DNA of 64,000 bases from Monocercomonoides exilis PA203 (taxonomy: Eukaryota; Protista; Preaxostyla), in the NCBI GenBank assembly GCA_001643675.2, contig LSRY02000003.1, forward strand, positions 1,984,001 through 2,048,000. Reading direction: 5' to 3'. A program made the position numbers and the translations under genes. Below, one piece after another: positions 3,001 to 36,968 of the stretch. Position 1 is the stretch's first letter, and the number at the start of each line of letters is the position of its first letter. Under the pieces are notes generated by a model. The model had not been told where the DNA came from. It worked only from the letters and a program-made list of their open reading frames with translations, and made no database searches.

Positions 3001-4251
3001 ATGCTGAAAATATTCATTTTGATAAAATTTCATATTTTGAAGCAAATTCTCGATATTTTTCAATTGCAAAATTCAATCTCTTTCTCTCCATTCACTTCTC
3101 TCCCTTTCTTCTCTTCACTCAACAGCCCATCCACTTCTCTCTCTGCATTCAATACCTCTTTCCTCCACCAAACTCGATCTTTACCAAATGATCCTGTTGT
3201 ATATGAAGGAAATGAAACTCACAGAAAATCACCTGGAAGGTTGGGTATTTCTGAATTGAACAGTTATCTTTTTGAATGGTGCGAATGGAATTATTCAAAC
3301 AGCGGATCTTCATCTGGTGGTGCACTTTATGTTAACTGTACATATGCTAACCTCACAATAGCATCTTGTTCATTCAATAATTGTTCTTGCACAGGAAATG
3401 GTGAAGGAGGAGCAATATTCTGTCGATACTTGTTGAAAATCAGCATCATAAAATCCAATTTCACAAGTTGCTCGGCTGCACATGCAGGTGCTGCTTTTGT
3501 TGGCTGGCCACAATCCAGTTCTGTCTGGGTATTATCAGAAAACCGAGTGGAAAATTGCGAAATAACAAGTTGGTGTGGAACTGGTTGGGAAATAGTGCTT
3601 GACAATATGTCATCAAACGGTCAATTCCTGTTTTCGAAATGTGTCAGTATTGCTAATACCGGAGGTGATGCAGCTGGTGCAGTCACATTTAATTATCCTC
3701 CACCAGTAATGCCTCTTCAATATTTGCTCAAAGAGTGCCAGTTCATCAACAACAAATTGACAAGCACTTCAACTTCCTATGGTGGTGCTGGTATTCATTG
3801 CACCAGAACATCAAATTGGATGAGTGGAGTAAAATTCATCACATTCTGCTTCTTCGATGGAAACACCGCAACAAATGGAAGGGGAAACGATGTGTTCTTC
3901 AGTGGTAATGCAATCACCCAATCTCCATTTGAAAATTGTGGATCAACAACCCCAACACAAAGAGTGTGGAATGCAGGAACAGCTGACAATGCTGAATATA
4001 ATGGCTGGCTCCCCCTCATCGCCCAGAACAAAATCGTTGCCAGCAATGGAACTGATGCTGATGCCTGTGGCAGACCCCAACAAACCCCATGTGCCACCAT
4101 CGAGTATGCCCTCAACGGCTTCATCTCCCTCCTCTACGACGCCTCCCTCACCCTCCTCTCCTCAACATTTGTTCCAACTCAAACACTCACTTTCAGCGCA
4201 GTTGATACAAAATTTACTGGAAAAGATGTATTTTTTCAGGTTCTCATATAA
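3001..4251 (+). CDS. Variable beta-helix cassette 2 (short form, 416 aa; lacks the NPIDG leader motif)
   Basis: ATG-initiated ORF with FEWCEW, repeated GGAL/GGAI, CGTGW, FITFCFFDGNTATNGRGNDVFF and GTDADACGRPQQTPCATIEYAL. Family homology ends at DTKFTG (~4221). Confidence 0.8.
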   Translation: MLKIFILIKFHILKQILDIFQLQNSISFSPFTSLPFFSSLNSPSTSLSAFNTSFLHQTRSLPNDPVVYEGNETHRKSPGRLGISELNSYLFEWCEWNYSNSGSSSGGALYVNCTYANLTIASCSFNNCSCTGNGEGGAIFCRYLLKISIIKSNFTSCSAAHAGAAFVGWPQSSSVWVLSENRVENCEITSWCGTGWEIVLDNMSSNGQFLFSKCVSIANTGGDAAGAVTFNYPPPVMPLQYLLKECQFINNKLTSTSTSYGGAGIHCTRTSNWMSGVKFITFCFFDGNTATNGRGNDVFFSGNAITQSPFENCGSTTPTQRVWNAGTADNAEYNGWLPLIAQNKIVASNGTDADACGRPQQTPCATIEYALNGFISLLYDASLTLLSSTFVPTQTLTFSAVDTKFTGKDVFFQVLI

Positions 4252-5756
4252 ATTCTTTCATTTTCCATATCATAGAAAAATTCATAAGCTATCATAGCTT
4301 TTTCAATTGGAGTATATATCATCATTATTTTTTTCAGAAATCCATACCATCAACAAGACATAAATTTTTCTTCGTCATTACCTCATCTAATTTTTCTTCT
4401 CCATCAACTACAAATTAAGCTCATGAAAAAAGATTCATTGCTGTCGTATCTTCAAAATACATTTCTTCAAGCATAGCAACAATCTCTTCAAAAATATCTG
4501 TTTCTTTTGTTTCACTGATTCCAACTTGCCTGTTGGCTGTCGAAGCTCTTATCTCATTGAATTGTCCTTCAAATATCGATTTTCCAATAAATCGCTTTAT
4601 CTTTGTTTCATCTTCGATGACTCATTAAAAGTGTATCGCATTGTGAAATCTCTCGAAGATCATCGAAATAATCGTTAATTATAAATGTTGTTTTCTGTCT
4701 TGTTCTTTCTGTTTTCTGTAATTCTTTTAATCTCAAAATAAATAATGTAGATTCGATCTTCATGGGTTGTGCACCAGAGGATCAACTTTTCTTGGCTTAA
4801 TATAGTTCTCTCATTTTCATCCTACTTCAGCTGGCATTCTATGTCAGAATGAACATTTCTTTTGTGTTTCAGAAAAGAAAATAAAAGATAACGCTTGGCC
4901 CTGAATTCGAGGGGAGTTGAATGAATTTGAATAAACATTATTTTTACCGATCATTGAAGAAGGCGTTGAAGAATACGATGAAAATGAAATCAAATAAATT
5001 CGTTCAAATTGCCTTTTTTCATCATTAGAATCGTGAATGAAAAATGAAAAGAAGGACAATTTTGCGATTGATCTGCCGAGCAGAAGAAAAGAGAAGGAAA
5101 TAATTTTCGTTTCAATTTTGTGGAGCTGTATATTGGAGCGTATGAACACAATAGAAGGTCGATAGCCTGATCCTACTCGTTGAAAGTGAAAACGTTATTG
5201 AAGGAGCTGAAGAAGAAGAAAATGACAAAATTGAAGTTGGAGGAGTTTGGGGGAAAGGACAAGACGCAGAAGAAATAACAGAATTTGAAGAAGATGAAGA
5301 AGACGAGAAGATTGAGAGACGAACAATTAGTCAAATAACATTTCCGAAGAAGATGATGAAAATGACTCGTATGATGTTGTCAGTTGGTTAAACGTCACAT
5401 TTGATAAGTTGACTTCGGAAGAAATATAAAAACTTCGATCATAAAAAATATTGGCCAATTCGCATTTATTTGTCAATGAAAACTGATATCCTCAGTTCAT
5501 TGGCAAACTTTGTGTGATTTCATTGCCTTTCTCTCCAAAAACAAAAAATTATGATGTTTGTCTGTTGGCTCTGAAAAAATACAAACGATATAAATATCTG
5601 ATGAAGATATTGACAAAAAAGAAGACGCAGATGAAGAAGCGGCAGAAGAAAAAGAAAACAGAGAAAAATTTGGAGGAAGAGTCAGAATATAATGCAGAAG
5701 AAGATTGTTTTGCTTGTTTTGAGATTGATGGTGACGGATCAGTTGATAAAGACAAA

Positions 5757-6050
5757 GAAGAAGAAGAAGAAGAAGAAGAAGAAGAAGAAGAAGAAGAAGA
5801 AGAAGAAGAAGAAGAAGAAGAAGAAGAAGAAGAAGAAGAAGAAGAAGAAGAAGAAGAAGAAGGAGGAGGAGGAGGAGGAGGAGGAGGAGAAGAAGAAGAA
5901 GAAGAAGAAGAAGAAGAAGAAGAAGGAGGAGGAGGAGGAGGAGGAGGAGAAGAAGAAGAAGAAGAAGAAGAAGAAGAAGAAGAAGAAGGAGGAGGAGGAG
6001 GAGAAGAAGAAGAAGAAGGAGGAGGAGGAGGAGAAGGAGGAGGAGAAGAA
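5757..6050 (+). repeat. Compound (GAA)n/(GGA)n trinucleotide microsatellite
   Basis: About 290 bp of pure purine made of alternating GAA and GGA blocks. Confidence 0.98.
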
Positions 6051-6183
6051 TAAGAATAAGAAGAAAAAGAAGACGAGGAAGAGGAAATAGAAGAATTGGA
6101 AGAAGACGGTGATAATAAATGAATTGATGAGTTGATTGAAGATTGAGAATTGTGACGATTATAAAAATCGAACAACAAAGGAG

Positions 6184-7551
6184 ATGTTCGTAGAAATCGT
6201 TAATTTCTGGTTTTTCAACTCAGAGTTCATCTGGCAAACAAAAACTCTCCAAATATTTTTCGCATTCATCTCAACCATCTTCCTCCACACCCACAACCCC
6301 ATCGATGGTGCCATTCTCCCCAACTTCAACGCCCCTGCCACTTCTCTCTCTGCCTTCAACACCTCTTTTCTTCACCAAACACGTTCTTTGTCAAATGCTC
6401 CTGTTGTGCATGTTGGAACTGAATCTCAAAGAGTGAAACTTAAAAGATTGGATTATTTTGATCTGAACAGTCATCGCTTCGAATGGTGCGAATGGAATGA
6501 TTCTAATAGCGGAAGTGCCTGGGGAGGTGCACTGATAGTTAACTGCACAGACGCAAATCTCACAATAGAATCTTGTTCTTTTCGCAATTGTTCAACGACT
6601 GGGGAAGCAGGAGCGTTATACTGTGGGCAACTATTGAAATTAAACATTGAAAAATCCAACTTCACCAGCTGTCAAGCTATGCATGGAGGAGCAGTCACTT
6701 CTTGGGCTCCTCAATCAAATTCTGATTGGTCATTCTCAGAAAACAGAGTGGAAAATTGTTCAATAACATACTGGTGCGGTACTGGATGGTTCTTTTACAT
6801 TGGTGATTTTTCTTCAAACGGTCAATTCCTGTTTTCCAAATGCAAGTGTATCGCAAATTCTGGTGGAGACTCAACGGGTGCTTTAACATTTCAAAATCCG
6901 CCAAGCAACAAACCTAGTCAGTTTTCAATTAATGAATGTCAGTTCATCAATAATAAATTGACAAGTTCATCGTATTATGGAGGTGCTGCAATTTTCTTCT
7001 ATTCAACTTTTTCCTGGATGAATGGAATGAAATTCATCACATTCTGTTTCTTCGATGGCAACACTGCCACAAATGGCAGGGGAAACGATGTGTTCTTCAG
7101 TGGAAGCAGCATCACCCAATCTCCATTCCAGCAATGTGGCTCAACGACTCCATCAAAAAGAGTGTGGAATCAAGGAACAGCTGAAAACGCTGAATATAAT
7201 GGCTGGCTTCCAATCATCAATCAGAACAAAATCGTTTCTAACAGCGGAACTGATGTCGATGCCTGTGGCAAAACACAGCAAAGCCCATGTGCCACTGTGG
7301 AGTATGCTCTCGGATGCGTTGCTCCCTTCAGCGATGCATCCCTCTCTCTTCTCGTCTCCACTTTCACTCCCACAAACACTCTCACATTCCGTGCCCCAAA
7401 TACAAAAATTTATGAAAATGATGAATTTTTTCTGTTTTCATCAGAATTTCTTCCATTTATTAATTTTGAATATTTTCCATATCAGAGAAATATCCTACAC
7501 CTATCATCTTCTTTTCAATACGAGAACATATCATCGCTTATCTTTCATTGA
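6184..7551 (+). CDS. Variable beta-helix cassette 3 (short form, CGKTQQSPC...GCVAPF C-terminal type)
   Basis: Same framework. The family start context ttcgATGaaatc reads ttcgTAGaaatc here, and the nearest in-frame ATG is 6184. Homology ends at ~7410. Confidence 0.7.
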   Translation: MFVEIVNFWFFNSEFIWQTKTLQIFFAFISTIFLHTHNPIDGAILPNFNAPATSLSAFNTSFLHQTRSLSNAPVVHVGTESQRVKLKRLDYFDLNSHRFEWCEWNDSNSGSAWGGALIVNCTDANLTIESCSFRNCSTTGEAGALYCGQLLKLNIEKSNFTSCQAMHGGAVTSWAPQSNSDWSFSENRVENCSITYWCGTGWFFYIGDFSSNGQFLFSKCKCIANSGGDSTGALTFQNPPSNKPSQFSINECQFINNKLTSSSYYGGAAIFFYSTFSWMNGMKFITFCFFDGNTATNGRGNDVFFSGSSITQSPFQQCGSTTPSKRVWNQGTAENAEYNGWLPIINQNKIVSNSGTDVDACGKTQQSPCATVEYALGCVAPFSDASLSLLVSTFTPTNTLTFRAPNTKIYENDEFFLFSSEFLPFINFEYFPYQRNILHLSSSFQYENISSLIFH

Positions 7552-9171: not shown

Positions 9172-11526
9172 ATGAAATTTCTATTTTTTCTCTTCTTTTC
9201 TTTTGTTTTCTTTTGACAAATAAGATCCTCCACCTTATCCTTCTATATCCGCTCATCCATCTTCCTCCACGCTCACAACCCCATCGATGGAACCATCCTC
9301 CCCAACCTCAACAGCATATTCACTTCTCTCTCTGCCTTCAACGCTTCTTTCCTCCACCAAACACGTTCTTCATCAAATGGCCCTATTGTGCATGTTGGAA
9401 ATGAAACCAACAGAAAGAAACCTGGAAGATTGTTTGATTTTGATCTAAACAGCCATCGCTTTGAGTGGTGCGAATGGAAAGATTCAAATGGAGGAAACGA
9501 TCATGGAGGCGCACTTAAAGTTAGTTGCACAAATGCAAATCTCACAATCGCTTCTTGCTCATTTCACAATTGTTCAACCACAGGTAATTATAATGGCGGA
9601 GCATTGTATTGTAATCGTTCGTTGAAGTTAATTATCATCCAATCCAATTTTACAAGTTGCTCTGCATTACATGGAGGAGCTGCAGAAATAATATATCCTC
9701 AAACAAATTCTGTTTGGTTATTCTCAGAAAATAGAGTGGAAAGTTGTTCAATATCTGGCTGGTGTGGAACTGGTTGGTATTTTGCTCTAAATAATAATCA
9801 GTTAAATTTTCAATTTCTGTTTTCCAAATGCAAGTGCATCTCAAATTCTGGTGGTGATGCTGCTGGTTCTTTGACATTTGCAAATCCACCAATTAATAAA
9901 CCAGAGAAATTTTTGGTTGATGATTGCCAATTTATTAACAACGAATTGACTGCTTCTTCCACATATGGCGGCGCTGCAATTTTCTTCTATTCAACTTATT
10001 CCTGGATGAATGGAATAAAATTCATCACATTCTGCTTCTTCGATGGCAACACTGCCAAAAATGGCAGGGGCAATGATGTGTTTTTCAGTGGAAGCAGTAT
10101 CACCCAATCTCCATTTGAGAATTGTGGATCAACAACCCTATCGAAAAGAGTGTTTAATAATGGAACAGCAGACAATGAAACTTTCAATGGCTGGCTCCCC
10201 CTCATTGCCCAGAATAAAATTGTTGCCAGCAATGGAACTGATGCTGATGTCTGTGGCAGACCCCAACAGACCCCATGTGCCACCATCGAGTATGCCCTCA
10301 CCGGCTTCATTTCCCTCCTCCAAGACGCCTCTCTCACCCTCCTCACCTCAACATTTGTTCCTATTCAAACACTCACTTTCAGCGCAGTTGATACAAAAAT
10401 CACTGGAAATGGCACAACTGCCACCACCATCGCCTCCAGTGGCATTCCCCAACCACAAAACTCACATTCACACTCATCACAATCAACATCATCTCTTTCC
10501 TCATTTTCATCATTTTCATCTGCATCTTCTTCACCAGATCCATCTGCCTCGTCTGCCCTCTTCCAACAGACCCAGGGCTCCCTCACAGTCTCTGCTCTCG
10601 CCATCGCCCACAACTCCTCAAACCCCATCACCCCCATCCTCTTCCACCTCTCCGGTAACTCCCCTTCCCTCAACCTCAACACAACCACCATCACCGGAAC
10701 AACCTCCATAACAATCAAAACACCCCTCTTCTTCCTCACTGCTGGCTCCCTCGCCCTCAACCACACAGCAATCACTCATCTCACCCTCTACAGCCAAAGC
10801 ATCTTCCACCTCACCTCCCTCACCGCTCCCCTCACCCTCAACTCCTCCAACATCACCGGCATCACCTCCACAGCAACTCCCATCAGCTGTGTCCTCTCCT
10901 CTGCCACCTCCCCTGCCCTCTCCCTCTCCCTCGCCAACTGCACCATCACCAACATCGACTCAGCTCCACAAAACCAACAGACTGCCACCAATGGCGGGTG
11001 CATCTCATTCGCCTCATCTTCCACTGCCAACACATTTTCTGTGAGGAACTCCACCTTCTCCAGCTGCTCTGTGAGCGAGGATACAAGTTCTGGAGGAAAA
11101 GGCGGCGCTCTCATGGTTGAGTTCAATGAAGGCTCACAAGTGTCATCCACAACCTTTTCCATCACCAATATCGTGTTTTCAGCCAACAAGGCCAGTGTCG
11201 GAAGAGATATGTATTTTGTGTGTGAATCATTTGTCGCTTCTGTGAAAGAGCCCTTGTTCGCCTTCATGAGAAGCATCACTCAGAAAGACAACTCGGCTGT
11301 TGGACATGACAGAACAGAAGCATTCGGTGATTGGAATGTCGATTTGTTTATATTTCTCAACGGGCGTACAGCTGACAATGAATGCGTGGATGGTCATCTT
11401 GGCATCAAAGCAATGAATTGCTGGCTATCAAAGATGCCCTTCAAAAGCACACAAAATGCGATGGGTTTTCTGAAGAAGGTGCAGATCATAAGGCAGAAAT
11501 CATTTCATCAGCTGACTTGTCGGTGA
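9172..11526 (+). pseudogene. Variable beta-helix protein copy 4, LONG form, with in-frame TGA in the signal peptide
   Basis: ATG 9172 gives MKFLFFLFFSFVFF*QIRSS...HAHNPIDG, with TGA at 9214-9216 where copy 9 has TTA (Leu). The frame continues into the 712-aa ORF, which extends past KITGN into a Ser/Thr-rich beta-helical region and NKASVGRDMYFVC. Confidence 0.8.
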
Positions 11527-11868
11527 ATTTATGTGCAAATGAAGGCAAAGTCGAAGAAAGTTGGGGAGATGGCACACAAAATTGAAGAAAACATCTCATA
11601 TGTGCATTTGATGAAATCAACATTGCTTGTCGGGCATTTATTCTCTTCTTTCATAGAATTATCCATTAAATATGCCTTTTCAAATAAATATGTTTCCCTC
11701 ATCGTTTCATCTTCTCCGACATATTGAAGGCGTGTGACGTTGTGTAACCTGCCGAACGCTATTTTTGAGCTCATTCATTTCATAAAAGAATTGCTCTAAT
11801 ACTCTTTCTTTTTTATCTGCGCCTCTTTCAGCTTCCAAATAAAAAAAGGCAAAATCGTCCTCCTTTTT
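11476..11868 (+). repeat. Identical ~390 bp direct repeat at the 3' end of both long copies (partner 53264-53656)
   Basis: Offset 41788; identical ORF translations 11529-11774 and 53317-53562. Confidence 0.92.
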
Positions 11869-12840
11869 CGATTGCAAGTCTGCTGCTCTGCTTTTCTTGA
11901 TTCGAAATCATATCTATTCTTATTTAATTTCGGCTTACCTTCCATCTTAGAATAAATATTAATCTTGGCTTTCTGAAAAAAGGTTTAGGCAAGTTTTGGA
12001 CTTAAATTTGAGGAAAGTTGAGCAATTTAAAAATTGCAATATTTTTGTTTCTCCTTGAAGAAGGCGTTGAAGAAGAACAGAACAAGAATTAAAAGACTGA
12101 TATTGACCCAAATAGACTTTTTATCACAAATAACTTGAATGGAAATATAAATTATACAGTTATTGATATGTCGAGAAGAAGTGAAGAAATTGAAGCTATT
12201 TTTGTCTCATGTGGTATTTCTGCTGACTGAAAATGCATAAAATTTTCCAAATGAGGATGCTCCGCCCCAATGCGAAGTGAGATGGAGCGGCAAAATAGTC
12301 AAAGATCGATGAATAAGACGAATAAGGCGAATAAGGCGAAGAAGATAGTAAAGAAGGAAAATAAAAATGGAAACAGAGAAATCTATGAATAATCAGATGA
12401 TTTTTTTTTGTAGAAGAATATGAGAAGGCTCCATATGACGTTGTTGATTGAATATAATATCTTTCTTAACAAGTTGACTTCACAAGAGATAATAATCCAA
12501 ATTGCAATATTTATGACTGATACTTTCAAGCCTATAAACTTAATAATATTCCCTCAAAGTTAATTGACTCCATTTTCTGTTAGCGAAGGGAAAGGCAGGG
12601 ATCCCACAAAAAGGATGTTGTTCTGTCAGCGCTAAAAATTCAAATGAATCAAAAGCCTAATAATGATACAACAAAGAAGACGAAGACGAAGACGAAGAAG
12701 GGGAAGAAGAAGGGGAAGAAGAAGGTGAAGAAGAAGAAGAAGAAAAAGAAGACGACGACGATGATGAACGAATCAAATACGTTGATTGAAGGTCGAGATT
12801 TGCTGAGGAGAATGATAACAAATAAAAACAGAGTGTTTCG

Positions 12841-14304
12841 ATGAAATCATTTTTTCTTCTTCCATTTTCGTTGATCTTTTTGCAAATAAAATCCTCCAAT
12901 TCCTCCTTCTCCATCCACTCATCCCTCTTCATCCATGCCCACAACCCCATCGATGGAGCCATTCTCCCAAACCTCAACAGCCCATCCACTTCCCTCTCTG
13001 CCTTCAACTCTTCTTTTCTTCATCAAACACGTTCTTTACAAAATGATCCTGTAAAGCATATTGGAACAGAATCTCAAAGAGCGAAACCTGGTAGATTGTC
13101 CTTTACTGCTTTGAATACCTACCTCTTTGAATGGTGCGAATGGTATAATTCTAACAGTGGATCAAGCGATGGAGGTGCACTTTATGTTATTTGCACAAAT
13201 GCAAATCTCACAATTACTTCTTGTTCATTCAATAAATGTTCGTGCACTAATGGATACAGTGGTGGGGCATTGTTCGCTCAAAATTTATTAAATGTCAATT
13301 TCGCAAAATCCAATTTCACAAGTTGTTCAGCTGTTCATGCAGGAGCTGCTTATGTTGGGTATCCGCAAACAAATTCTGTTTATTCATTCTCAGAAAACAG
13401 AGTGGAAAGTTGTTCAATATCTGGCTGGTGTGGAACTGGTTGGTATTTTGCTCTAAATAATAATCAGTTAAATTTTCAATTTCTGTTTTCCAAATGCAAG
13501 TGCATCTCAAATTCTGGTGGTGATGCTGCTGGTTCTTTAACATTCAATGCTCCTCCAGGAACCAAACCAAATCAATTTTTGGTTAATGATTGCCAGTTCA
13601 TCAACAACAAAGTCGAAAATCCAACTTCATATGGTGGTGCTGCGTTGTGTTGCACAAGAACATATGATTGGATGAATGAAGTCAAATTCATCACATTCTG
13701 CTTTTTCGATGGCAACACTGCAACTAATGGAAGGGGGAATGATGTGTTCTTCAATGGCAGCAGCATCACCCAATCTCCATTCAATCAGTGTGGATCAACA
13801 ACCCCAACTAAAAGAGTGTGGAATCAAGGAACGGCTGACAACGTTGAGAAAAATGACAGGTTTTGGCTTTTCTTTTCATATTTCTTCTCTTTTCCTGTTA
13901 TCTTCTCTTTTCCATCCATTTTTGCTTTTTCTATTTTCTTCTCTTTCGTTAATATATTTTTTGATTTCTTCTGCATTTCATCATCTTCCCTTGTTTCGTG
14001 TTTTGAATCTCAAACATCTTCCACTGTTCATCCAAATCCATTTCTTCATATTTCTTTCTCTTTCCATCTCTTCACAAATCCAACTTCCTGCCACATTCTC
14101 CTCTTCCTTCCATATTCTTCCTTTCATTCACGCATCTTCTTCCTTTCTTCCAAAAATGTCTTCAACCCTCTCAATCTCATTTCCATCAAGCATGAATCCG
14201 AGATCAAGAATTTCTTTCTCTTTCTTTTTCTTATTTTTATTTCTTATTTTTTCCTTCATCAACACATTTCCTTGTTTCCTTTTCATTTCATTCATGATCT
14301 CTGA
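12841..14304 (+). CDS. Variable beta-helix cassette 5 (intact signal peptide; truncated at ~13842 and fused to a Phe/Ser-rich tail)
   Basis: MKSFFLLPFSLIFLQIKSS leader and full variable domain. Homology is lost after RVWNQGTADN. Confidence 0.8.
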   Translation: MKSFFLLPFSLIFLQIKSSNSSFSIHSSLFIHAHNPIDGAILPNLNSPSTSLSAFNSSFLHQTRSLQNDPVKHIGTESQRAKPGRLSFTALNTYLFEWCEWYNSNSGSSDGGALYVICTNANLTITSCSFNKCSCTNGYSGGALFAQNLLNVNFAKSNFTSCSAVHAGAAYVGYPQTNSVYSFSENRVESCSISGWCGTGWYFALNNNQLNFQFLFSKCKCISNSGGDAAGSLTFNAPPGTKPNQFLVNDCQFINNKVENPTSYGGAALCCTRTYDWMNEVKFITFCFFDGNTATNGRGNDVFFNGSSITQSPFNQCGSTTPTKRVWNQGTADNVEKNDRFWLFFSYFFSFPVIFSFPSIFAFSIFFSFVNIFFDFFCISSSSLVSCFESQTSSTVHPNPFLHISFSFHLFTNPTSCHILLFLPYSSFHSRIFFLSSKNVFNPLNLISIKHESEIKNFFLFLFLIFISYFFLHQHISLFPFHFIHDL

Positions 14305-17390: not shown

Positions 17391-18614
17391 TCCAGTGATT
17401 TTTGTATTTGGAGAACGGAATGTGAGAGTGTTTGTGGGAATGAAAGTGGAGACGAGAAGAGAGAGGGAGGCATCGCTGAAGGGAGCAACGCATCCGAGAG
17501 CATACTCCACAGTGGCACATGGGCTTTGCTGTGTTTTGCCACAGGCATCGGCATCAGTTCCACCATTTGCAACGATTTTGTTTTGGTTGATGATTGGAAG
17601 CCAGTCATTATACACAGCATTATCAGCTTGTCCATTATTATACACTCTTTGTGTTGGAGTTGTTGATCCACAATTCTCAAACGGAGATTGGGTGATATCA
17701 CTTCCGTAAAAGAACACATCATTCCCTCTGCCATTTGTTGCGGAATTGCCATCGAAGAAACAGAATGTGATGAATTTATTTCCACTCATCCAAGTGAAGG
17801 TGTTTGTGCAACACAGTCCAGCCCCTCCATAATTTGCAGAAGCAGTCAATTTGTTGTTTCTAAACTGACAATCATTGACTGAAAATTGATTTGGTTTTTC
17901 TTTCGGAGGCCAATGAAATGTGAGAGAACCAGCAGCATCGCCACCAGAATTTGAGATACACTTGCATTTGTTGAACAGAAATTGACAGGCTGAGGTCATA
18001 TTATTGAGCCAAAAATACCAACCGGTTCCGCACCAACTTGTTATTGAACAACTTTCCACTCTGTTTTCTGAGAATGTCCAAACAGAATTTGATCGTGGAC
18101 TTGTAGCATGGACTGCTCCTCCATGAGCAGCCGAGCAACTTGTGAAATTGGATTTTGTGATATCAATTTTTAACAAACTATTGCAATATAACGCTCCGGC
18201 ATGATCGCTTGCCGAACATTTGTTGAACGAGCAAGAAGTGATTGTGAGATTGGCATTGACACAATAAACCTTAAGTGCACCTCCATCGCTTGACACACCA
18301 TTTGAATCATTCCATTCGCACCATTCAAATTTGTGGCTGTTCAGATCAAACGAAGTCAATCTACCAGGTTTCGCTCTTTGAGTTTCGGATCCGTTATATC
18401 TTACAGGATCATTTGGTGAAGAGCGTGTTTGGTGAAGGAAAGAAGCGTTGAAGGCAGAGAGGGAAGTAGAAGGGCTGTTGAAGTTGGGGAGAATGGCTCC
18501 ATCGATGGGGTTGTGGGCATGGATGAAGAGGGATGAGTGGATGGAGAAGGAGGAATTGGAGGATTTTATTTGCAAAAAGATCAACGAAAATGGAAGAAGA
18601 AAAAATGATTTCAT
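17337..18614 (-). CDS. Variable beta-helix cassette 6 (intact signal peptide, 425 aa, GCVAPF type)
   Basis: Leader identical to cassette 5 through HAHNPIDGAILPN. Complete framework, with homology ending at NTKITG (~17390). Confidence 0.85.
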   Translation of the reverse strand: MKSFFLLPFSLIFLQIKSSNSSFSIHSSLFIHAHNPIDGAILPNFNSPSTSLSAFNASFLHQTRSSPNDPVRYNGSETQRAKPGRLTSFDLNSHKFEWCEWNDSNGVSSDGGALKVYCVNANLTITSCSFNKCSASDHAGALYCNSLLKIDITKSNFTSCSAAHGGAVHATSPRSNSVWTFSENRVESCSITSWCGTGWYFWLNNMTSACQFLFNKCKCISNSGGDAAGSLTFHWPPKEKPNQFSVNDCQFRNNKLTASANYGGAGLCCTNTFTWMSGNKFITFCFFDGNSATNGRGNDVFFYGSDITQSPFENCGSTTPTQRVYNNGQADNAVYNDWLPIINQNKIVANGGTDADACGKTQQSPCATVEYALGCVAPFSDASLSLLVSTFIPTNTLTFRSPNTKITGKDVFFLFSSEFLPFSIS

Positions 18615-18721
18615 CGAAACACTCTGTTTTTATTTGTTATTATTCATTTTCGCATATCTCCTTCTTCAATCAACGTATTTGATTCGTTCGTCATCGTCGT
18701 CTCCTCCTTCTCCTATTTCTA

Positions 18722-18947
18722 CTTCTTCACCTTCTTCTTCACCTTCTTCTTCACCTTCTTCTTCACCTTCTTCTTCACCTTCTTCTTCACCTTCTTCTTC
18801 CCCTTCTTCTTCCCCTTCTTCTTCACCTTCTTCTTCCCCTTCTTCTTCACCTTCTTCTTCACCTTCTTCTTCTTCTTCTTCTTCCCCTTCTTCTTCACCT
18901 TCTTCTTCACCTTCTTCTTCACCTTCTTCTTCACCTTCTTCTTCACC
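18722..18947. repeat. 12-bp minisatellite (CCTTCTTCTTCA/C)n upstream of cassette 6
   Basis: Directly visible tandem array. Short versions occur upstream of cassette 5 (~12695-12735) and at ~40705-40745. Confidence 0.95.
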
Positions 18948-20185
18948 ATCACCTTCTCCTTCTTCTTCTCCTTATACTCCGTCTTTTTCTTCATCTCCTC
19001 CTTCGCTTTCATTATCATCTATGTTATCTTTCTTGTCTTCATCTTCAAATTAGTGTGTGCAATAATATCATCTGCAATTTCCTTATGACAAAGAGAAACC
19101 ACAGATTAATTTTCATGTCTTTCTCTTCTCTTTCCTTCTCCATCTCCTTCATTTTCATGTGCTTCTTCATTTTCATCATCATCATCTTCTTCTTCAACTC
19201 CTCCAACTTTTTCAATGCTATCTTCACTCACTTGGAGTTGAATCGGAATATCACCTATCTGTTGCATTCATACGCTCCAATCAACAGAGACGCAAAATTG
19301 AACTAATAATTATTTCACTTGCATTTCTTTGTCTCAACAATCAATCACTGAACTAGTCTTCATTTTTCATTCACAATTTTGATGATGAAAAAAGGTAATT
19401 TGAACGAATTGATTTCATTTCATTCAAATCAACTTCTTCTTCAACTCCTTCTTCAACGAGCAGCAAAAATTATGTTTATTCAAATTCATTCAACTCCCAT
19501 CGAATTCAGCTCCAGACCTTGTCTTTCATTCTTACACAGAAAGACAAAAGAAATATTTATTCAAATAATGAATATCAGCAGAAATTATGATACAACGAAA
19601 TGGAAGTAACTTTTAGAGGAGAATAGGCTATTAGCAGCGCAAAATAAAAAAAAAGTGAGGTTGATTTTTCCCTTTTTCATTTGGAAGTTGAAAGAATTCA
19701 CAGAAATTGTAAAGAACAGGACAGGATAGGATATTTGGGGTGAATTGGTTACAAAATAGCCTTCAATTGAATTCACAACTTCAAAACTGGAGCAAATTGT
19801 TGAAAATGAAACATGAAGAAAAGCATTTTTGAGGAAAAGGCGTATTTGAAGGGAAATTTCAAAGAGATAGTTGAGCGAATCGGATACAAGCATGTTGAAA
19901 TATGAACGCTGAGGAAAATATAATAATTGAAAAACCTTCGAATATGATTGAAGAAATACTATATGAAAAGAAGATATAGATGATATAAAGCAACGAGCTT
20001 TATTTTCATTGGATGCAGAAACTAAAATAGATGAAGAAATATCGAAGAAATATTTTTATTTGAGCTGATGTTAAGGATTTTGAAAGAAAAGTATTGATAT
20101 ATGATTTAGTTGAAAGTGATATGAAAGCTTAAGAAATTTTCTATGATATGGAAAAAATCACAACAAGATGAAACGTTTGAGGAAA

Positions 20186-21550
20186 TTACAAGGAGATTAG
20201 AAAAGCGTCATCATTTCCAGTGATTTTTGTGTCGACTGCTCCGAAGGTGAGTGTTTGAGTTGGGACAAATGTTGAGGAAAGGAGGGTGAGGGAGGCGTCT
20301 TGGAGGAGGGAAATGAAGCCAGTGAGGGCATACTCGATGGTGGCGCATGGGGTCTGTTGGGGTCTGCCACAGGCATCAGCATCAGTTCCGCTATTAGAAA
20401 CGATTTTGTTCTGGGCGATGAGGGGGAGCCAGCCATTGAACACATCGCTTTCAGCTGTATTTTTATTCCACACTCTTTTCGATAGGGTTGTTGAGCCACA
20501 TTGCTGGAATGGAGATTGGGTGATACTGCTTCCACTGAAGAATACATCGTTTCCTCTGCCATTTGTGGCAGTGTTGCCATTGAAAAAACAAAATGTGATG
20601 AATTTTACTCCACTCATCCAAGTGAAGGTATTTGTACAGCACAGCCCAGCTCCACCATATGTGGTTGGATTTTCGACTTTGTTGTTTATAAACTGGCAAT
20701 CATTGATTGAAAATTGACTTGGTTTGTTGCCTGGAGGAGAATTGAATGTGAGAGAACCAGCAGAATCACCACCAGAATTTGAAATGCACTTGCATTTGGT
20801 GAATAAGAATTTACCATTTGATGGAAAATCACCAATCCAGAAATACCAACCAGTTCCACACCAGCCAGATATTGAACAACTTTCCACTGTGTTATCTGAG
20901 AATGAATAAACAGAATTTGATTGTGACCCACCAATACAATTTGCTCCTCCATGAGCAGCTGAACAATTTGTGAAATTGGATTTTGTGATATCAATTTTTA
21001 ACAAATTTCCGCAGAACAATGCTCCTCCTTCCCAGCCACCTGTGCAAGAACAATTGTTGAATGAACAGGAAGTGATTGAAAGATTTGCATTTTCACAAAC
21101 AACATAAAGTGCACCTCCACGATTTGACCCACCAGTTGTATCATTCCATTCGCACCACTCAAAGAGATAGCTATTCGGGTTGAATGAGTACATTCTTTCT
21201 AATTTCAATTTTTGAGTTTCTGATCCGTTATATTTTACAAGATCATTTGGTGAAGAGCGTGTTTGGTGAAGGAAAGAAGAGTTGAAGGCAGAGAGAGAAG
21301 TGAATGGGCTATTGATGTTGGGGAGGATGGTGCCATCAATGGGGTTGTGGGTGTGGAGGAAGATGGTTGAGCGGATAGAGAGAGATGAGTGCAGGGAGAA
21401 TGAGGGAATTGTGTTGAAATTTGTGTTGATGGAAATGGAAGTGGAAGAAGAGGAAGAAGTGGTTGAGATGAAAGGATTGAGTGAGTGAGGGGGAAGGGAT
21501 GGAAGAGATAGAGAGGATTGGGGAGAGGAGATGTTGGAGAAGAGAGTATA
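20186..21550 (-). pseudogene. Variable beta-helix cassette 7 (Ser-rich leader without in-frame start)
   Basis: Frame is open from 21550 after a TAA at 21553-21551 and includes NPIDG and the 340-aa ORF 20186-21208. Ends DTKITGNDDAFLISL. Confidence 0.8.
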
Positions 21551-23591: not shown

Positions 23592-26313
23592 TTGACAAAT
23601 GTTTCAATGAGTAATATGGAACTTATGGGCAAAAGCATTGTGTCTGTGCTGGAGCAGGGCGAATTGCAAGACGAGCCACAGGAATTGAATGCAGGAGAAG
23701 ACCTAGCAGTGAATCTTAGATGCTGCACACTCCATTCGCTTCTCCAAAATGCTCCATCTGAGCCCTCCATCATCAGCTGCATTGGTAGCGAGCCTTGTAG
23801 CGTGTCTGTGCAAAACACATCGATGAAGAACTGTAAAAGCAGCCAAAGTGAAAGCGGTGGAGGAATGATTATGAGTCTAAGCGAAGGAGGTTTTTTTGAG
23901 TGCAGTTTTTCAGCTATCTCTGGATGTTTCTGCTCAGCGACCGGCAGAGGAGGCACTATATTCCTGGATTGCTCTTTGATCACAAGAGATGTCCTGCTTC
24001 CTTCCCTGTAAAAAAACACCGCATTCATGGAGAACAAAGCATTTGTGGGAAGAGACGTGTATGTGAAATGCGCGAATGCGAAAACTCAAACAGGAGCTGA
24101 GCTGTTCGATCTTGATTTCAGAGCGCCGTTTGTCAGGGAGTTTGCGATGTGTGGATGCGCAGCACCTGACTATGCTGATGAGCAAGATCTGTTGCTGCTT
24201 GTGGTTGTGTATCAGAGCGAGACAATATTTGCATCTTCAACAACGGACAACGCTTCTGATTCGCAGCAGCGTGGCGCAATGAGCGAACCGTTCATTTCCT
24301 TGAATGAAGCTCTGCCCCACATCATTCCTTCAGTTTACAGCAGTTTTCTGATTGACAAAAGCGCTGAGGTGACAGGGGAAGCAAGCGCTTGCGATGTTTG
24401 GCTCAAGTCGCTGGATGAAGAAGGAGAAAGAGGGAATGTTGTGCTGAACAGCAGCATCGGAAGCAAGACGAAAAGCCTCGTTTCGTGCTCATCGAGAGTG
24501 AAAATGGAATTTCTCACGTTTTTGTTTGGAAGCGCATTTTCTTCTTCTCATTCCAGCTTGTTATTGCTGGCTGATGAAAACTTGTCTATTTCAGACGCAG
24601 CATTTTCTCAAGAAGATTCGAATGGAAACTCTGAAATGAAATTGAATTGCTCCATCATTCTCGTTGAGAATGGCAGATTATCGATCAATGGATGCACTTT
24701 TTCTTTCTTTAGTCTCAGTTCTTCGTACCTGGCAGCAAGAGGTGTCCAATATTGCTCATATATGAACTTGAACATTTCTGACATGAATTCAAGTGCGTTA
24801 TTGGACTTCCGCAATCTTGCAAACCTGTTCATGTCTCAGGTGCTTATTTTCAGGTGTATTTTTGATCGATCCCCTCTCGTCCTTCGCAATTACAAAGATT
24901 CACAGCTTCAGAACATTCAGATGAAAGGCACTTAGAGCGGATCAAACGTGATTGTGCTTTCCTCAGATAGTTCTGGAGGCCATTCAAACATCCAATACTA
25001 TCATTCGGAATTCGATGCAATATCTGTGCTGTCTGGTTCTTGGCATTCAATAAAATGCCAAGATTCAGATATTGAGATCATTCTTGGCTATTTCAAACAC
25101 AATGCTTGGAGAAGGATGTGCAGTGAGCGTGACATAGAATGTTTCGTCATTCCATTTGAAGCAGTCTTCATTTCAAAACGTAACTAGAGATTCGCTTTGT
25201 CCGTGTTGCTTGGTTGCTTCATCTTCATCTTTTTTGCTGGAATTGGAAAACTGCTCGAACAAAAAGTGTGTTTCCACATCTGAAAAAGGGAGCATTGAAG
25301 CGTTGGCAGATTTGACGGATGTAAACTTATCTTCATGTTCATTTGATGGAGCAACAAGCGCACCAGAGTTGAGAGCGAGCGATGATCGATCAGAAGAGCT
25401 GTGCCAGTGGATTAGATCAATGGTTGATCTTCAGAATTGCTCGTGAAGAATATTAGACACGAGCATTGTCAATTCATCTAAAGGAGGGCTGTCTGTATCA
25501 GGCGGAAGCATTTCCATCCAATTTGTATTATTCACCAACAACAGACCGAATGTTGCATGCTATCCACACATGAGGAACTTCATCGCCTGCTCTGTCCATG
25601 CGCTTCTGAATATTGAAAGTTCGAAAGTCGGGGATGGCTTTCTTCCAAACACCTCGATGTGGATTTCCACCAGTTTGAGAACATTGGAAAAATGGCTTCA
25701 GAAAGAGCATCCCGTTCCTCATTCAACAGCTAAATTCAGTGATATCTTTCCAGTAAGGTGACACCCTTGCAGTTGATCTTGCTGGTTCCTTGCTTCTGCA
25801 TTGCGACTTGGCTCTCCAGGTTGATTCCTTCGATTGAATGGTTCACGAACTCCAGGTGTATCCGCATCTGTCAGAAGAGCTAGCAGGTGAAATAGAGAAT
25901 CATGAAGCCATTCCTGCATCAATTGTTTCAATGCATCTGAGAAAACAGAAATATCTGCAAAGATCTTGTTTGGAAAGATTGATTCTCTTTCATGACGGAG
26001 TCATTCATCCTGAAGAACAGAACTAAATCTGAGCTAAAGGGAGATGGAAAACTTGTTGAAGGAGGGAAAGAAAGAAAAATCATTTTTGCCAATTGTTGAG
26101 ATTGTGTGTGTTGTATTTGTTGTGCTTCTGCTTGTAATTGTTGCTATTCTGGCTGTTCGATGGAAGAAGGTGAAGAATGAAGCAGATGATCTGAAAGAGA
26201 TTGTGAATGATAACATCAAAAAGGATCCTAAGGCATTTGAAATGGTAACGATGGAGACATTACTAGTAGAGCAGTGGAGGAGAGCAGTCAAGGAGGTAGA
26301 GAAGACTTATTAA
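23592..26313 (+). pseudogene. Decayed large single-pass membrane protein of the same beta-helix superfamily
   Basis: Fragments 23592-24011, 24027-24935 and 24948-25187 share one frame and are separated by single TAA/TAG stops; frameshifted pieces follow. The motif GRGGTIFL...NKAFVGRDVYVKC resembles NKASVGRDMYFVC of the long copies. A C-terminal TM helix IVCVVFVVLLLVIVAILAV is followed by RWKK. Confidence 0.75.
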
Positions 26314-30241: not shown

Positions 30242-33200
30242 ATGGGCCATTATAAAGATTGTTTTGCCATTTTTTGTCCTTATTTTTTACAAATATTTTT
30301 TGTTTATTTAATGAAAATTTTGCCTTTTTTATCATTTTGCTTCAAAAAGACAAATTCGTTAAGCGCATTGGTCATGGCGCTTTTGGATTTGTATCGCTTG
30401 TTAGACATGTTCAGACTAGAAAAAAATATGTTTGGAAAGAAATGCCTTTCGAGAAAAAATCGGAAGTGATTCATATTCGAAAGGAAATGGTTCTTCTTCA
30501 AAAACTGAAATCTCCTTTCATTGTAGAATACATTGATTCATTTATTTCTGGATCTTCGTTATTCATTGTTATGGAATATTGCGATAAAGGAGATTTGAAG
30601 AGATATATTCGAGATGCCAAAGAAAGAGGATTGAAACTAACGAAAGAGGTTTTCATCAACTTGTTTTTATAAAGAAAGGCTAGTGTTTTTAAAATTTTCA
30701 ATGTTTGCAGAAACTATGGGATTTTTTGTCACAAATTACCTTGGGCCTTGATTTTCTTCATAGTCATCATATTGTTCATCGTGATTTGAAGCCTGCAAAT
30801 ATCTTTTTGTTTGGGGATTTTAACATCAAACTGGGTTTGTTTCCTTATGCAAGCGTTCTTATTGAAGACTTTTTTTTCGATGGGGAAATATTTATAATGA
30901 AAATTGAACAGGTGATTTTGGATTGGCAAAAGAGCTTGAAAGTTCTGATTCTTTGACTCATTCTCGCGCTGGAACACCGTTTGTTAATTTTTTTTCAAAT
31001 TTGTTCTTGATCTACCTATGTCATATGTTCGTGCGTATATTCTATAATTTGACGTTTGACAGGTACTACATGTCCCCTGAGCAATTTCGAAGAGAAGAGT
31101 ATTCAACGCCCATCGACATCTGGTCGCTGGGTGTGATTTTGTATGAGCTTGCGACACTTCGTCATCCTTTTCCTGCAGATGACGAAGCATCGCTCGCACG
31201 AAAAGTTCTGAATGACCCACTTCCTCCTTTTGACACAGAAGGCGCTTATTCTGAATCCTTTCACAAAGTGCTTATTCAGATGCTAGACAAGGTTTGTAAT
31301 TCTCCTTTTTGTTTATCTCTTTTATCATTCTCGTGCATTTTCATTATGACCTCTTTACATCTTTTTCTTCATTGATGTTCTCTTTCCCTCTTTTTCTTTC
31401 TTTTTCTTTTTCTTTTTCTTTCTTTCTTTTTTTCTTTTTTTCTTTTTTTCTTTTTTTTCCCTCTTTATTTTTATTTCCTCCATTTGTTTATCTGTTTCAT
31501 ATTTGCAACGAACTTCTTTGATCATTACAGGATGCTCAAAAAAGACCAACAACTGGAGACATCTTAACAATCCCAGAGGTACAAGAGCGAGTTGCCTCTT
31601 CTCGTGCAAATTTTTCAGTGCGTTCTCATTCAATTTTTGCACATCAACCAAAATTGGGAGGAAACTTAGATGAAATGAAAGTTGATGACAACGAAGGCGA
31701 AGAAGACGATGATGATAACGAGGAGGAGGAGGAGGAAGAAGAAGAAGAGGAGGAGGAAGAAGAAGAGAATGAAGAAGAGAATGAAGAGGAGGAAGAAGAA
31801 ATAGAAGAAGAAACAAATAATAAGGGCTTGAAAAAAGACACTCACAACATAGTGTTCCCATATCCTCAAAAGCCAAAGGTTCGTATTCATCAAAAGCAAA
31901 AGAAGATGTCTGGGGATGAATTGTGTGACACATTTGGTGAGCCTGAAAAGTTGCCTGGGTCATTTTGTGAAGAAACTCTGCCTCTTCTACCACCGTTGAG
32001 AGAACAGAGGGAAGAAGGTGGGGAAGGGAAGAGAGGAGCAGCAAAACATCGTCTTCTTGGTAGGCATAATGGCATTCGGAATTTTGGGAAAGGGAATGAG
32101 AAGGAGAAGAAGGATGATGCTCGTTCATCGCAACCACAATCTCATTTTCCTTCAGATTCCCTCCATTCACCCACTTCTCCTCCTCATTCCTCACCATCTT
32201 CTCCTTCATCATCATCATCACCATCATCTGCTTCAAATTCGTTGAATATTGGGAGTCAGCCTCATTTTGAACATCCATGCAGCAGTGCTTCTGTTGTGAT
32301 TCAACAAGAAGAATGCAAACAAATTCCTCTATCGTCGTCGTCGTCGTCGTCGTCATCATCATCATCATCTTCATCATCATCATCTTCTTCTTCATATTCC
32401 TCTTCATATATGATCTCGAATTCGAGTAGTTGTGATTGTGATTGCAATTGTTCATCGGCCAGCCAGCCATCTGCATCGCAGTTGTTTCTGTCTGGCAGCA
32501 CACAGTTTGAGAGTATCTACCACACGCCGATGCTGTCGAAGATTCCCTTTGGAAGTGCTTGTGAAGGATCTGATTGCTCTTGTGTGCAGATGCCTTTTAC
32601 GCCTCCACATCCTTCAGACACACTGCCTCTTCCTCCTCTTCCACCTCTTCCACCAACCCTCCCTCAACCTCCTCCGCCACCTGCAATGTTATCATGCATG
32701 ATGAGGCATCCACTCAGAGGAACAGATTGTTCTGAGACACGTCAATTTTCTTCTTCTTCCGCAACAATTATATCTGCAGATGGTTCTGCTATTTCGAGAG
32801 AGAATTCGCTTTCTTCACCCAACACACACCACGCAAACACCCCTTCGTTCACTGTTACATCTCCATCTGTTACTATCCTTCAGCCATCTGTCGGAACTTC
32901 CTCGTCTCCTCAATCTGAAAAATCTTCTTCTCTCTCACCTTCTTCGCATTCTTCTCCTTCGTTGCGTTCACCTCCACCTCCTTTTCCTCCTCCTCCTCCA
33001 CCGCCGCCACCACATCCTCCACATCCACCATCTTCGTCATCGTCGTCACTTCCACCACCTCCTCTTGATCGTCTGAATCAACCACTTTGCATGCCTTCGT
33101 TTCGTTCTTCGCAAAATTCTGTTAATTCAACAATTTCAGCAGTTCAAAGCGGATTTTCTTTACTCGAATCTCCAAATGTTTGTTCTTTGCAACAGCGTGG

Positions 33201-35777: not shown

Positions 35778-36968
35778 GGAAAATTCAACTTTTTTCTTTT
35801 TTCATTATTAATTCACACAACTCACAATCCCATCGATGGAACCATCCTCCCAAACCTCAACAGTCCATTCACTTCTTTCTCTGCCTTCAACTCTTCTTTC
35901 CTCCACCAAACACGCTCTTCATCAAATGATCCTGTTGAATATATCGGATCCGAAACTCAAAAAAAGGAATTAAGAAGATTATCCTTTACTGCTTTGAATA
36001 GCTATCGCTTTGAGTGGTGCGAATGGAATGATTCAACTGGTGGATCTTCATCTGGCGGTGCACTTTATGTTTATTGTGCAAATGCCAATCTCACAATCAC
36101 TTCCTGTTCATTCAACAAATGCTCAAGTAACGGATACGGTGGAGCGTTATATTGTAATCTTTCGTTGAAGATTGATATCGCAAAATCCAATTTCACAAGT
36201 TGTTCTGCTTTACATGGAGGAGCAAATTGTTTATCTACTCCACAATCAAATTCTGTTTGGACGTTCTCAGATAACAGAGTGGAAAATTGTAAAATAACAG
36301 ATTGGTGTGGAACTGGTTGGTTTTTTGCCATCAGCACCTTATCTTCAAACGGTCAATTTTTGTTTTCTGAATGCAAGTGCATCTCAAATTCAGGTGGTGA
36401 TTCTGCAGGCTCTCTCACATTTCATTGGCCTCCGAATAGCAAGCCCAACCTGTTTTCAATCATTGAGTGTCAGTTCATCAATAATATGTTAACTTCATCA
36501 TCCACTTATGGCGGAGCAGGAATATACTTTGATGGAACTTACTCTTGGATGAATGGAATAAAATTCATCACATTCTGCTTCTTCGATGGCAACACTGCCA
36601 CAAATGGAAGAGGAAATGACGTGTTCTTCAGTGGTAATGCCATCACCCAATCCCCATTTGAGAATTGTGGCTCAACAACTCCAACTAAAAGAGTGTATAA
36701 TAATGGACAAGCTGATAATGCTGAATATAATGGCTGGCTTCCAATCATCAACCAGAACAAAATCGTTTCTAACAGCGGAACTGATGTCGATGTCTGTGGC
36801 AGGCCCCAACAGACCCCATGCGCCACCATCGAGTATGCCCTCAACGGCTTCATTTCCCTCCTCCACGACGCCTCTCTCACCCTCCTTTCCTCAGCATTTG
36901 TTCCTTCTCAAACACTAACTTTCGAAGCGGTTGACACCATAATCACTTTGACAATGAACTTTTTCTAA
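35778..36968 (+). pseudogene. Variable beta-helix cassette 8 (5' truncated, no in-frame ATG)
   Basis: Frame is open from 35778 (TAA at 35775) through THNPIDGTILPN into ORF 35994-36968. The ATG at 35767 is out of frame. Confidence 0.8.

Follow-up and report, generated by a model that had tools for sequence, protein, structure and literature searches.

Chlamydial Pmps (PF02415, Chlam_PMP) and the Pmp-like proteins of trichomonads share a right-handed β-helix in which the motif GGA[ILV] is followed by F-x-x 14-18 residues on. In the Pmps, which constitute a large paralogous surface family, GGA is located at the end of turn T3 and the start of strand PB1, and the conserved residues point inwards (PMC11166332). 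The same fold is found in carbohydrate-binding proteins such as pectate lyases, in which T3 and PB1 line the substrate site (PMC10992409). An unrelated fold, the leucine-rich repeat (LRR) horseshoe, underlies the variable lymphocyte receptors (VLRs) of lampreys as well as the LRR receptor-like kinases (RLKs) and NLRs of plants; in these solenoids the x positions of one sheet vary on a fixed scaffold, giving a Tyr-rich surface. In the present study, we compared these systems with a repeat-bearing domain encoded in 64,000 nt of AT-rich eukaryotic DNA (contig 25, C25:1984001-2048000; this whole stretch is referred to as the window) from Monocercomonoides exilis, a gut protist and the best-known eukaryote without mitochondria. 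We consider it probable that this domain is the variable tip of a surface protein family, that it carries a paralogue-specific binding face, and that its diversity was recombined rather than fast-evolved.

The domain was analyzed in an open reading frame (ORF) of 416 aa at 3001-4251 (+). This ORF, referred to as copy 2, encodes the tip alone, and its N-terminus is atypical. Its N-terminal tip domain of 368 aa, as delimited by tblastn and alignment, spans 3118-4221 (+); residues are numbered from nt 3118, where the DNA homology to other copies starts, and the homology to long copies ends at 4223. A tblastn search with the protein of this ORF revealed 14 paralogous copies in the window, on both strands, with a domain of ~370 aa and 63-71% aa identity. 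Two alignment sets were used. Set A contained 32 copies, nine of them from the window, and was almost gapless (371 columns for 368 residues), with a mean column identity of 80%; set B contained 57 further genomic copies, including 22 from full-length genes, which shared no more than 93% identity, and typically 81%, with any set A copy. The two sets together comprised 89 distinct copies.

The genome (82.3 Mb, 101 contigs) yielded 2,070 first-look candidates, and 111 were scored, every one of which was at least 70% identical to copy 12 of the window. When the 32-copy profile was searched against 1.84 billion representative sequences, 2,264 hits were obtained; of ten that were looked up, nine were "hypothetical protein MONOS_*" entries of M. 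exilis, including distant ones that matched the entire domain, and one was a metagenome protein. The family is therefore reported here as most likely specific to M. exilis, as far as these searches indicate. Many genomic copies sit within open frames of 2,600-3,100 aa, and these full-length copies, which number in the dozens to hundreds, are scattered over many contigs. As judged from sequence, the full-length members appear to be receptor-kinase-like type-I membrane proteins in which a β-helix ectodomain of ~2,250 aa is followed by one transmembrane helix and, on the cytoplasmic side, by a kinase-like domain, with the studied domain at the far N-terminal tip. In the full-length member L032 (L032:47-8512), a single hydrophobic transmembrane helix (aa 2488-2520) is followed by RKKL, and the PK_Tyr_Ser-Thr match by Pfam was partial, covering the kinase C-lobe only (profile positions 158-257). 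In contrast to the scattered full-length genes, nearly all tip-only copies (open frames of 400-780 aa) lie in one array of ~1 Mb, C25 ~1,520,000-2,510,000, which reaches towards the contig end and contains the window.

Fold of the tip and register of its variable residues

An AlphaFold2 model built on the 32-sequence alignment showed a predicted local distance difference test (pLDDT) score of ~90 for residues 40-300 and low scores for residues 1-38 and 304-368. DSSP assignment of this model revealed three short strands per coil (PB1, PB2 and PB3), which were arranged in a seven-coil right-handed parallel β-helix at 3301-3936 (+; residues 62-273). In the exhaustive structural alignment with VIA, the model matched many solved β-helices with Z-scores of 18-19 and root mean square deviations of 3.2-5 Å over 240-260 residues; the matches included GH87 glucanases, phage tailspikes, AlgE4, PL6 lyases and the PfbA adhesin, all of which are right-handed parallel β-helices. 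The Foldseek search against the PDB gave weak rows (E > 0.1), yet every one of them was a β-helix. From these models, the tip is predicted to be a right-handed parallel β-helix of the pectate-lyase-like kind. Pfam returned nothing at E up to 1 for copies 2 and 3; in particular, there was no LRR hit by Pfam, and an LRR structure appeared in Foldseek only at a TM-score of 0.09.

Each coil opened at a GGA-type anchor on the forward strand. The first anchor was GGA itself (3316-3324, residues 67-69), followed by GGA-type motifs at anchors 2 (3406-3414, residues 97-99) and 3 (3484-3492, residues 123-125), GTG at anchor 4 (3577-3585, residues 154-156), GGA-type motifs at anchors 5 (3673-3681, residues 186-188) and 6 (3781-3789, residues 222-224), and GND at anchor 7 (3883-3891, residues 256-258). 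Offsets +1 to +4 from the anchor corresponded to strand PB1 in every coil of the AlphaFold2 model. The T2 turn was 1-2 residues long in all coils, while T3 and T1 were longer. The coils measured 30, 26, 31, 32, 36 and 34 residues, and this range of 26-36 agrees well with the repeat of 25-35 aa that had been proposed in a first-pass annotation of this DNA.

According to per-column entropy, the variable zone extended over 3223-3831 (+; residues 36-238) and took in coils 1-6 together with the cap, all on the side of PB1; the span noted earlier, 3250-3830, corresponds to residues 45-238 of copy 2. The first-pass annotation had listed variable peptide strings after the third GGA, after GTGW, after L/VTF and then PP, and after the last GGA, and had proposed that these hypervariable residues fall in register after GGA-type motifs. 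The strings read AFVGWP, VTSWAP, AEIIYP, AYVGYP, VHATSP, NCIGGS, NCLSTP, ICIDGR, VTSWYP, NCIRYP, IAIDGR and VEIAYP after the third GGA; EIVL, FFYI, YFAL, YFWL, YFWI, FFAI, YFYI and YFRL after GTGW; NY, QN, AN, NA, HW, NS, SY, SW, HY, NW and NT between L/VTF and PP; and GIHCTRT, AIFFYST, ALCCTRT, GLCCTNT, GIYFDGT, AMFFRDT and AICFLPP after the last GGA. All of them were located at their places in the MAFFT alignment, and the register was upheld, as the +4 positions of coils 1-5 had a mean entropy of 3.08 bits compared with 0.94 bits for the helix region. This mean was reached by none of 100,000 random site sets. The individual +4 positions, referred to as the +4 ladder, were N73 in coil 1 (3334-3336, 3.0 bits), R103 in coil 2 (3424-3426, 3.5 bits), G129 in coil 3 (3502-3504, 3.0 bits), V160 in coil 4 (3595-3597, 3.3 bits) and N192 in coil 5 (3691-3693, 2.6 bits), all on the forward strand.

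When all seven coils were pooled by distance from the anchor, both the ratio of nonsynonymous to synonymous substitution rates (dN/dS, ω) and the entropy alternated along the offsets as in a β-strand, and sets A and B gave matching profiles. The GGA positions (offsets -2 to 0) were nearly invariant, with ω of 0.03-0.08 and mean entropies of 0.04-0.27 bits. Offsets +1 (ω 0.18, 0.65 bits) and +3 (ω 0.10, 0.78 bits) were low, offset +2 was higher (ω 0.38, 1.42 bits), and offset +4 was the highest, with ω of 0.90 (0.80-1.00) and 2.6 bits. Offset +5 (ω 0.53, 1.84 bits) and offsets -3 and -4 (ω about 0.5; 1.6 and 1.7 bits, respectively) were intermediate.

The 30 most variable sites were distributed over PB1 (9 sites), T1 (10), T3 (7), the N-cap (3) and the C-terminal part (1), while PB2, T2 and PB3 contained none of them. 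The difference in variability between the PB1 side and PB2/PB3 was significant (Mann-Whitney p = 8e-7), and outward residues of PB2 and PB3 were conserved, with a median site ω of 0.05-0.14. In a β-helix, the PB1 strands of successive coils are hydrogen-bonded to each other; residues at equal offsets therefore lie in a stack, ~4.8 Å apart, and their side chains point in the same direction. Since the variable sites recur at fixed offsets and such offsets stack, they would form one stripe along the helix, made up of the outer PB1 face and, as its two edges, the ends of T3 and T1. This stripe appears to run on to the N-terminal cap through an element that resembles a further coil, coil 0 (PGR-L at residues 39-42, with variable residues 43-47). 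The proposal of a single diversified binding face was thus supported in part: register and topology place the variation on one face, but selection above neutrality at the listed sites was not found, their pooled ω being 0.45-0.53.

The composition of the variable sites was also distinct. The surface had been described as rich in W, Y, H and R, and these residues made up 21.6% of the 30 most variable sites compared with 7.5% elsewhere. In particular, Tyr was enriched 5.4-fold and His 3.6-fold, together with Asp and Arg, whereas the other residues with AT-rich codons, Lys, Ile, Phe and Leu, showed no enrichment. Four N-x-S/T sequons at 3151, 3289, 3349 and 3457 (N12, N58, N78 and N114) were conserved in 74-89 of the 89 copies. 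N78 lies on PB2 and N114 on PB3, which are the conserved sheets, and glycans on these sheets could shield their faces and leave PB1 open.

To place the tip among the described systems, we compared its repeat with the Pmp repeat. The overall form was similar (GGA[LI]-x14-15-FxxC/N), and distant profile hits of the domain carried Chlam_PMP and Beta_helix. Copy 2 scored 10 bits (E 1.3) against PF02415, below the gathering score of 20.6 bits, and at E up to 10 the match was present in nine of 32 members, with a sub-threshold best E of 0.0038. The strict Pmp pattern, GGA[ILV] and FxxN 14-18 residues apart, occurred 0.01 times per domain and 2.3 times when FxxC was allowed; unlike in Pmps, the second motif was far more often FxxC than FxxN. 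The tip repeat is Pmp-like but is not a member of the family by Pfam or by motif. Other differences concern the context. No barrel or PMP_M of an autotransporter was detected by Pfam in the full-length member, which instead resembles a type-I membrane protein of eukaryotes ending in a kinase-like tail. In Pmps, the long T3 loops hold most of the variation, whereas its maximum in the tip is at PB1 +4.

The carbohydrate-binding β-helices (pectate lyases, PL6, GH87, tailspikes, AlgE4 and PfbA) were the best structural matches, with Z-scores of 16-19, and their substrate groove, on PB1 and flanked by T3 (PMC10992409), is on the side that varies here. Unlike these proteins, the domain caps a receptor-like protein as its tip. 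It has no detectable sequence relationship to them (Foldseek E > 0.1, 7-15% identity), and catalytic residues were not recognised in it. The earlier comparison with the concave face of VLRs was found to be a fair analogy of design, but kinship was not borne out, as the three-sheet Pmp-like β-helix and the LRR horseshoe are unrelated folds. Plant RLKs also join their ectodomain to a kinase, and LRR families likewise diversify by recombination between paralogues. In contrast to VLRs, there was no sign of somatic assembly, and the ω above 1 that is typical of exposed positions in plant LRRs was not recovered for the +4 ladder as a class. With respect to the tail, the family was compared with the tyrosine kinase-like (TKL) expansion of M. 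exilis and the Entamoeba transmembrane kinases; the full-length member carries PK_Tyr_Ser-Thr. In scaffold, the closest kinds are the Pmp-type β-helix surface families, and in logic they are the LRR receptor families. Receptors of the LRR type are already known to vary in register on one sheet; the tip would represent this design on a Pmp-like β-helix with a kinase-like tail, in the largest gene family of M. exilis.

PMC6759080 names TKL as the gene family with the most members in M. exilis, with 320 of 332 predicted tyrosine kinases, and PMC8767320 reports an overlap of the TKL family with unclassified repeats. Keyword searches of the two articles turned up no account of the ectodomain, its β-helix fold, the ladder of variable residues or the array of tip-only copies, and a broader literature search for a description of the M. 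exilis ectodomain found none.

Recombination and selection

The family tree was star-like and indicated heavy recombination, and segment types were nearly unlinked between neighbouring segments, over ~30 codons. The segment after the third GGA fell into discrete types, namely ICIDGR-like (38 of 89 copies), YVGYP-like (11), VHATSP-like (9) and others, and was conserved within types, with ω below 1 (0.68-0.83, residues 126-131). Single-linkage typing of the other variable segments chained most of them into one cluster, and only the segment after the third GGA was clean.

Identical tracts of 100-643 nt were present in pairs of copies that were only 76-85% identical overall, and tracts of 100-201 nt joined short and full-length copies. 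One tract of 150 nt (domain nt 301-450, coils 2-3) was shared by copy 6 and the full-length copy at C25:1790937-1792034, which are 80% identical overall; it indicates a putative recent gene conversion across ~200 kb. The similarity of short to full-length copies (0.758) was close to those within the two classes (0.765 and 0.754). The identical tracts and the intermixing of short and full-length sequences indicate that the array and the receptor genes still exchange sequence by gene conversion. Short copies had a terminal-branch ω of 0.246 and full-length copies one of 0.236 (p = 0.34 for the difference), and ω = 1 was rejected for the short copies with twice the log-likelihood difference (2ΔlnL) at 4,524, the frames staying open.

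The short copies ended at one sharp 3' junction after ACT GGA AAT (ITGN), which is located at 4223 of copy 2 and was also present in copies 3, 6, 7, 8, 9, 11 and 14. Past this junction, they share AT-rich non-coding sequence in place of the remaining ectodomain, with no sizeable ORF on either strand. Since the junction is shared, it points to what was probably one truncation event followed by amplification. An intron at the end of the short copies was rejected, as the junction codons GGA AAT lack the splice-donor GT.

Selection was evaluated with a Goldman-Yang codon likelihood written for this analysis, whose M0 value equalled that of IQ-TREE (-18923.08). In the site models, branch lengths were fixed apart from a single scale factor for each segment, and ω was taken on a grid. 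With a single tree, M7 versus M8 gave a 2ΔlnL of 128.7 and M8a versus M8 gave 99.3, with ~5% of codons at ω ~2.4. This signal was discounted because seven local trees, one per segment, raised the M0 likelihood by ~3,170 log units; each segment was treated as one tree, and the trees of 53-codon segments were noisy. With local trees, M8 was still better than M8a in set A (32 copies; 2ΔlnL 41.5, ω of the selected class 2.0, 4% of codons), in set B (57 copies; 31.7, 1.5, 4.4%) and in both sets combined (89 copies; 19.5, 1.2, 6.8%).

The first-pass annotation had expected dN/dS above 1 at the listed sites and a significant M8 versus M7 comparison. The former expectation failed in its strong form: the 19 listed sites, pooled as an a-priori class, were significantly below 1 at the ω already given, and even the best class, the +4 ladder, reached only 0.90. 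Among the listed sub-groups, ω was 0.68-0.83 for residues 126-131, 0.35 for residues 158-161, 1.0-1.1 for residues 192-193 and 0.20-0.33 for residues 225-231. The latter expectation was confirmed as a test result, for M8a as well, but not in its meaning, as the ω of the selected class fell to 1.2 and almost all ladder sites were lost once synonymous rates were free. When the synonymous rate was fixed per segment, L47 and R103 exceeded 1 in both sets independently. In a fixed-effects-likelihood (FEL)-type test, in which each site had its own synonymous rate (89 sequences, local trees), R103 gave p = 0.06 and L47 gave p = 0.33, F127 was negative, no ladder site fell below p = 0.04, and 226 sites were under purifying selection.

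We found that the variable sites evolve at a rate close to neutral, outpacing the scaffold 5- to 30-fold. The hypervariable codons were also rich in synonymous differences, and this excess fits old variants kept apart while the framework was homogenised. Pooled pairwise Nei-Gojobori dN/dS by structural class was uninformative because dS was near saturation (0.5-1.4), and all classes gave 0.05-0.36. These results call for caution in general: a multigene family that recombines and is very diverse in amino acid sequence can give a significant M7/M8 comparison and yet fit ω ~1 when the trees are local and each site has its own synonymous rate.

Function of the variable side

In the proposed arrangement, GGA would close turn T3 and open strand PB1; the +1 and +3 residues would face the core, while +2 and especially +4 would point outwards and stack on their equivalents in the neighbouring coils. 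Change between paralogues would be concentrated on the PB1 ladder and the adjoining ends of T3 and T1, with PB2 and PB3 kept near constant, and the function would be paralogue-specific ligand recognition on the PB1 side. The diversity would come from old, discrete rung variants reshuffled by gene conversion and not from rapid point substitution. The PB1 side is most likely the predicted ligand-binding face, and this explanation was favoured over drift because of the sharp anisotropy, the Tyr/His enrichment and the discrete conserved types. The candidate positions for specificity are the +2/+4 ladder, the T3 end and T1 of coils 0-5.

Several observations weigh against this binding-face explanation. 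The variable sites as a class did not exceed ω of 1, and the M8 signal shrank as sequences were added and recombination was modelled (ω of the selected class from 2.0 to 1.2). E148 (3559-3561) was the only clearly positive site in the FEL-type test (alpha 0.15, beta 1.5, p = 9e-6), and it lies outside the PB1 ladder: T3 of coil 3 contains a C-x-I mini-strand whose x is E148. The side-chain direction and exposure of the stripe are deduced from the register and fold topology. The kinase N-lobe was undetected by Pfam in L032, the sole full-length member examined; it is possibly very divergent, lost or beyond an unrecognised intron, and a pseudokinase is also possible. Copy 2 itself may not be expressed, because it covers the tip alone and starts atypically, and because an upstream ATG is lacking in about half of the window copies. 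Finally, relaxed constraint on one face is a live alternative.

Under relaxed constraint, the PB1 side would be an idle surface that drifts neutrally, PB2 and PB3 would be held by packing, oligomerisation or glycosylation, and the stripe would be a by-product. We regard this as a serious rival, although a rather doubtful one, and it stays live because only E148, a non-ladder site, was clearly positive under free synonymous rates. The near-neutral ω of the +4 ladder is what it predicts, most ladder sites being indistinguishable from 1 and none falling below p = 0.04 in the FEL-type test, and the sequons N78 on PB2 and N114 on PB3 could explain the constraint there. However, drift by mutation bias in an AT-rich genome does not match the enrichment of Tyr and His without that of Lys, Ile, Phe and Leu. 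It is also opposed by the discrete types after the third GGA with their within-type conservation, and by M8, which was better than M8a in all three data sets with local trees (2ΔlnL 19.5-41.5).

The tip-only array raises the question of a donor function. In a system of the antigenic-variation type, comparable with VSG, vlsE or VLR, the ~1 Mb array would be a silent archive that donates segments to expressed full-length genes, and we consider this improbable. It would account for the 14 window copies being tip-only fragments with one common 3' junction, for the full intermixing of short and full-length copies by sequence, and for the identical tracts of up to 201 nt that link both classes, including that of copy 6 across coils 2-3. 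The frames are open at a terminal-branch ω of 0.25, though half of the copies lack a start codon. On the other hand, ordinary ectopic gene conversion accounts for the exchange, M. exilis is a gut commensal, and we know of no immune-evasion biology in this species. As the full-length genes are many and dispersed, there is also no single expression site. A related proposal, which we rate as unlikely but slightly less so, is that the tip-only array (C25 ~1.5-2.5 Mb) is a maintained donor library that, through gene conversion, rewrites single PB1 rungs of the full-length receptor-kinase genes. If true, this gut protist would have cassette-based receptor retuning, a functional counterpart of VLR and VSG on a β-helix scaffold.

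The notion that the register is an artefact of misaligned repeats or of pseudogene comparison, for which one could cite the several copies that are truncated or without starts, is hardly credible given the nearly gapless alignment of set A, the rejection of ω = 1 for the short copies and the recurrence of the pattern in the 57 further copies, 22 of them from full-length genes, and it was refuted by the replicate set B.

Copies and other features of the window

Besides copy 2, the window contained tip-only copies at 6325-7407 (+; copy 3), 17391-18482 (-; copy 6), 20216-21316 (-; copy 7), 35856-36947 (+; copy 8), 38337-39434 (+; copy 9), 45985-47082 (-; copy 11) and 59446-60546 (-; copy 14). Copies 6 and 9 have an ATG and a signal-peptide-like start, copies 7, 8 and 11 are without an upstream ATG, and copy 14 has an in-frame stop near residue 41. 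Copies 4 (9307-11715, +, without an upstream ATG) and 12 (51101-53503, +) are longer fragments with ~820 aa of the ectodomain. Copy 1 (1-702, -) is interrupted by the window edge, and copy 5 (12973-13869, +) is truncated past ~residue 298 of the domain. Copy 10 (41679-42605, +) is also truncated, and its protein-level matches are identical to those of copy 13 (56486-57412, -) in inverted orientation; the two regions 41595-42794 (+) and 56297-57496 (-), ~13.5 kb apart, encode the same predicted protein of 399 aa. Copies 10 and 13 are a recent inverted duplication.

None of the 14 window copies was a full-length member, and none had a transmembrane helix or kinase. Ten lost homology to the full-length genes just past ITGN (nt 4223 in copy 2), two extended to ~820 aa, and three were shorter. 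Three or four copies had a typical signal-peptide-like start.

An isolated fragment at 23694-25665 (+) was 21-34% identical to C-terminal-ward parts (aa 1113-2350) of the full-length ectodomain and could be what is left of another member of the family, one more distantly related. Long purine/pyrimidine-skewed low-complexity repeats recurred in the spacers (5514-6178, 12664-12771, 18684-19050, 31680-31812, 40640-40760 and 57618-58165); their translation would give poly-E/G/K from one strand and poly-S/P from the opposite strand. Two large ORFs, at 31618-34494 and 61308-63539, were unrelated to the family, and the latter was GC-rich, with 58% compared with ~35% in the array.

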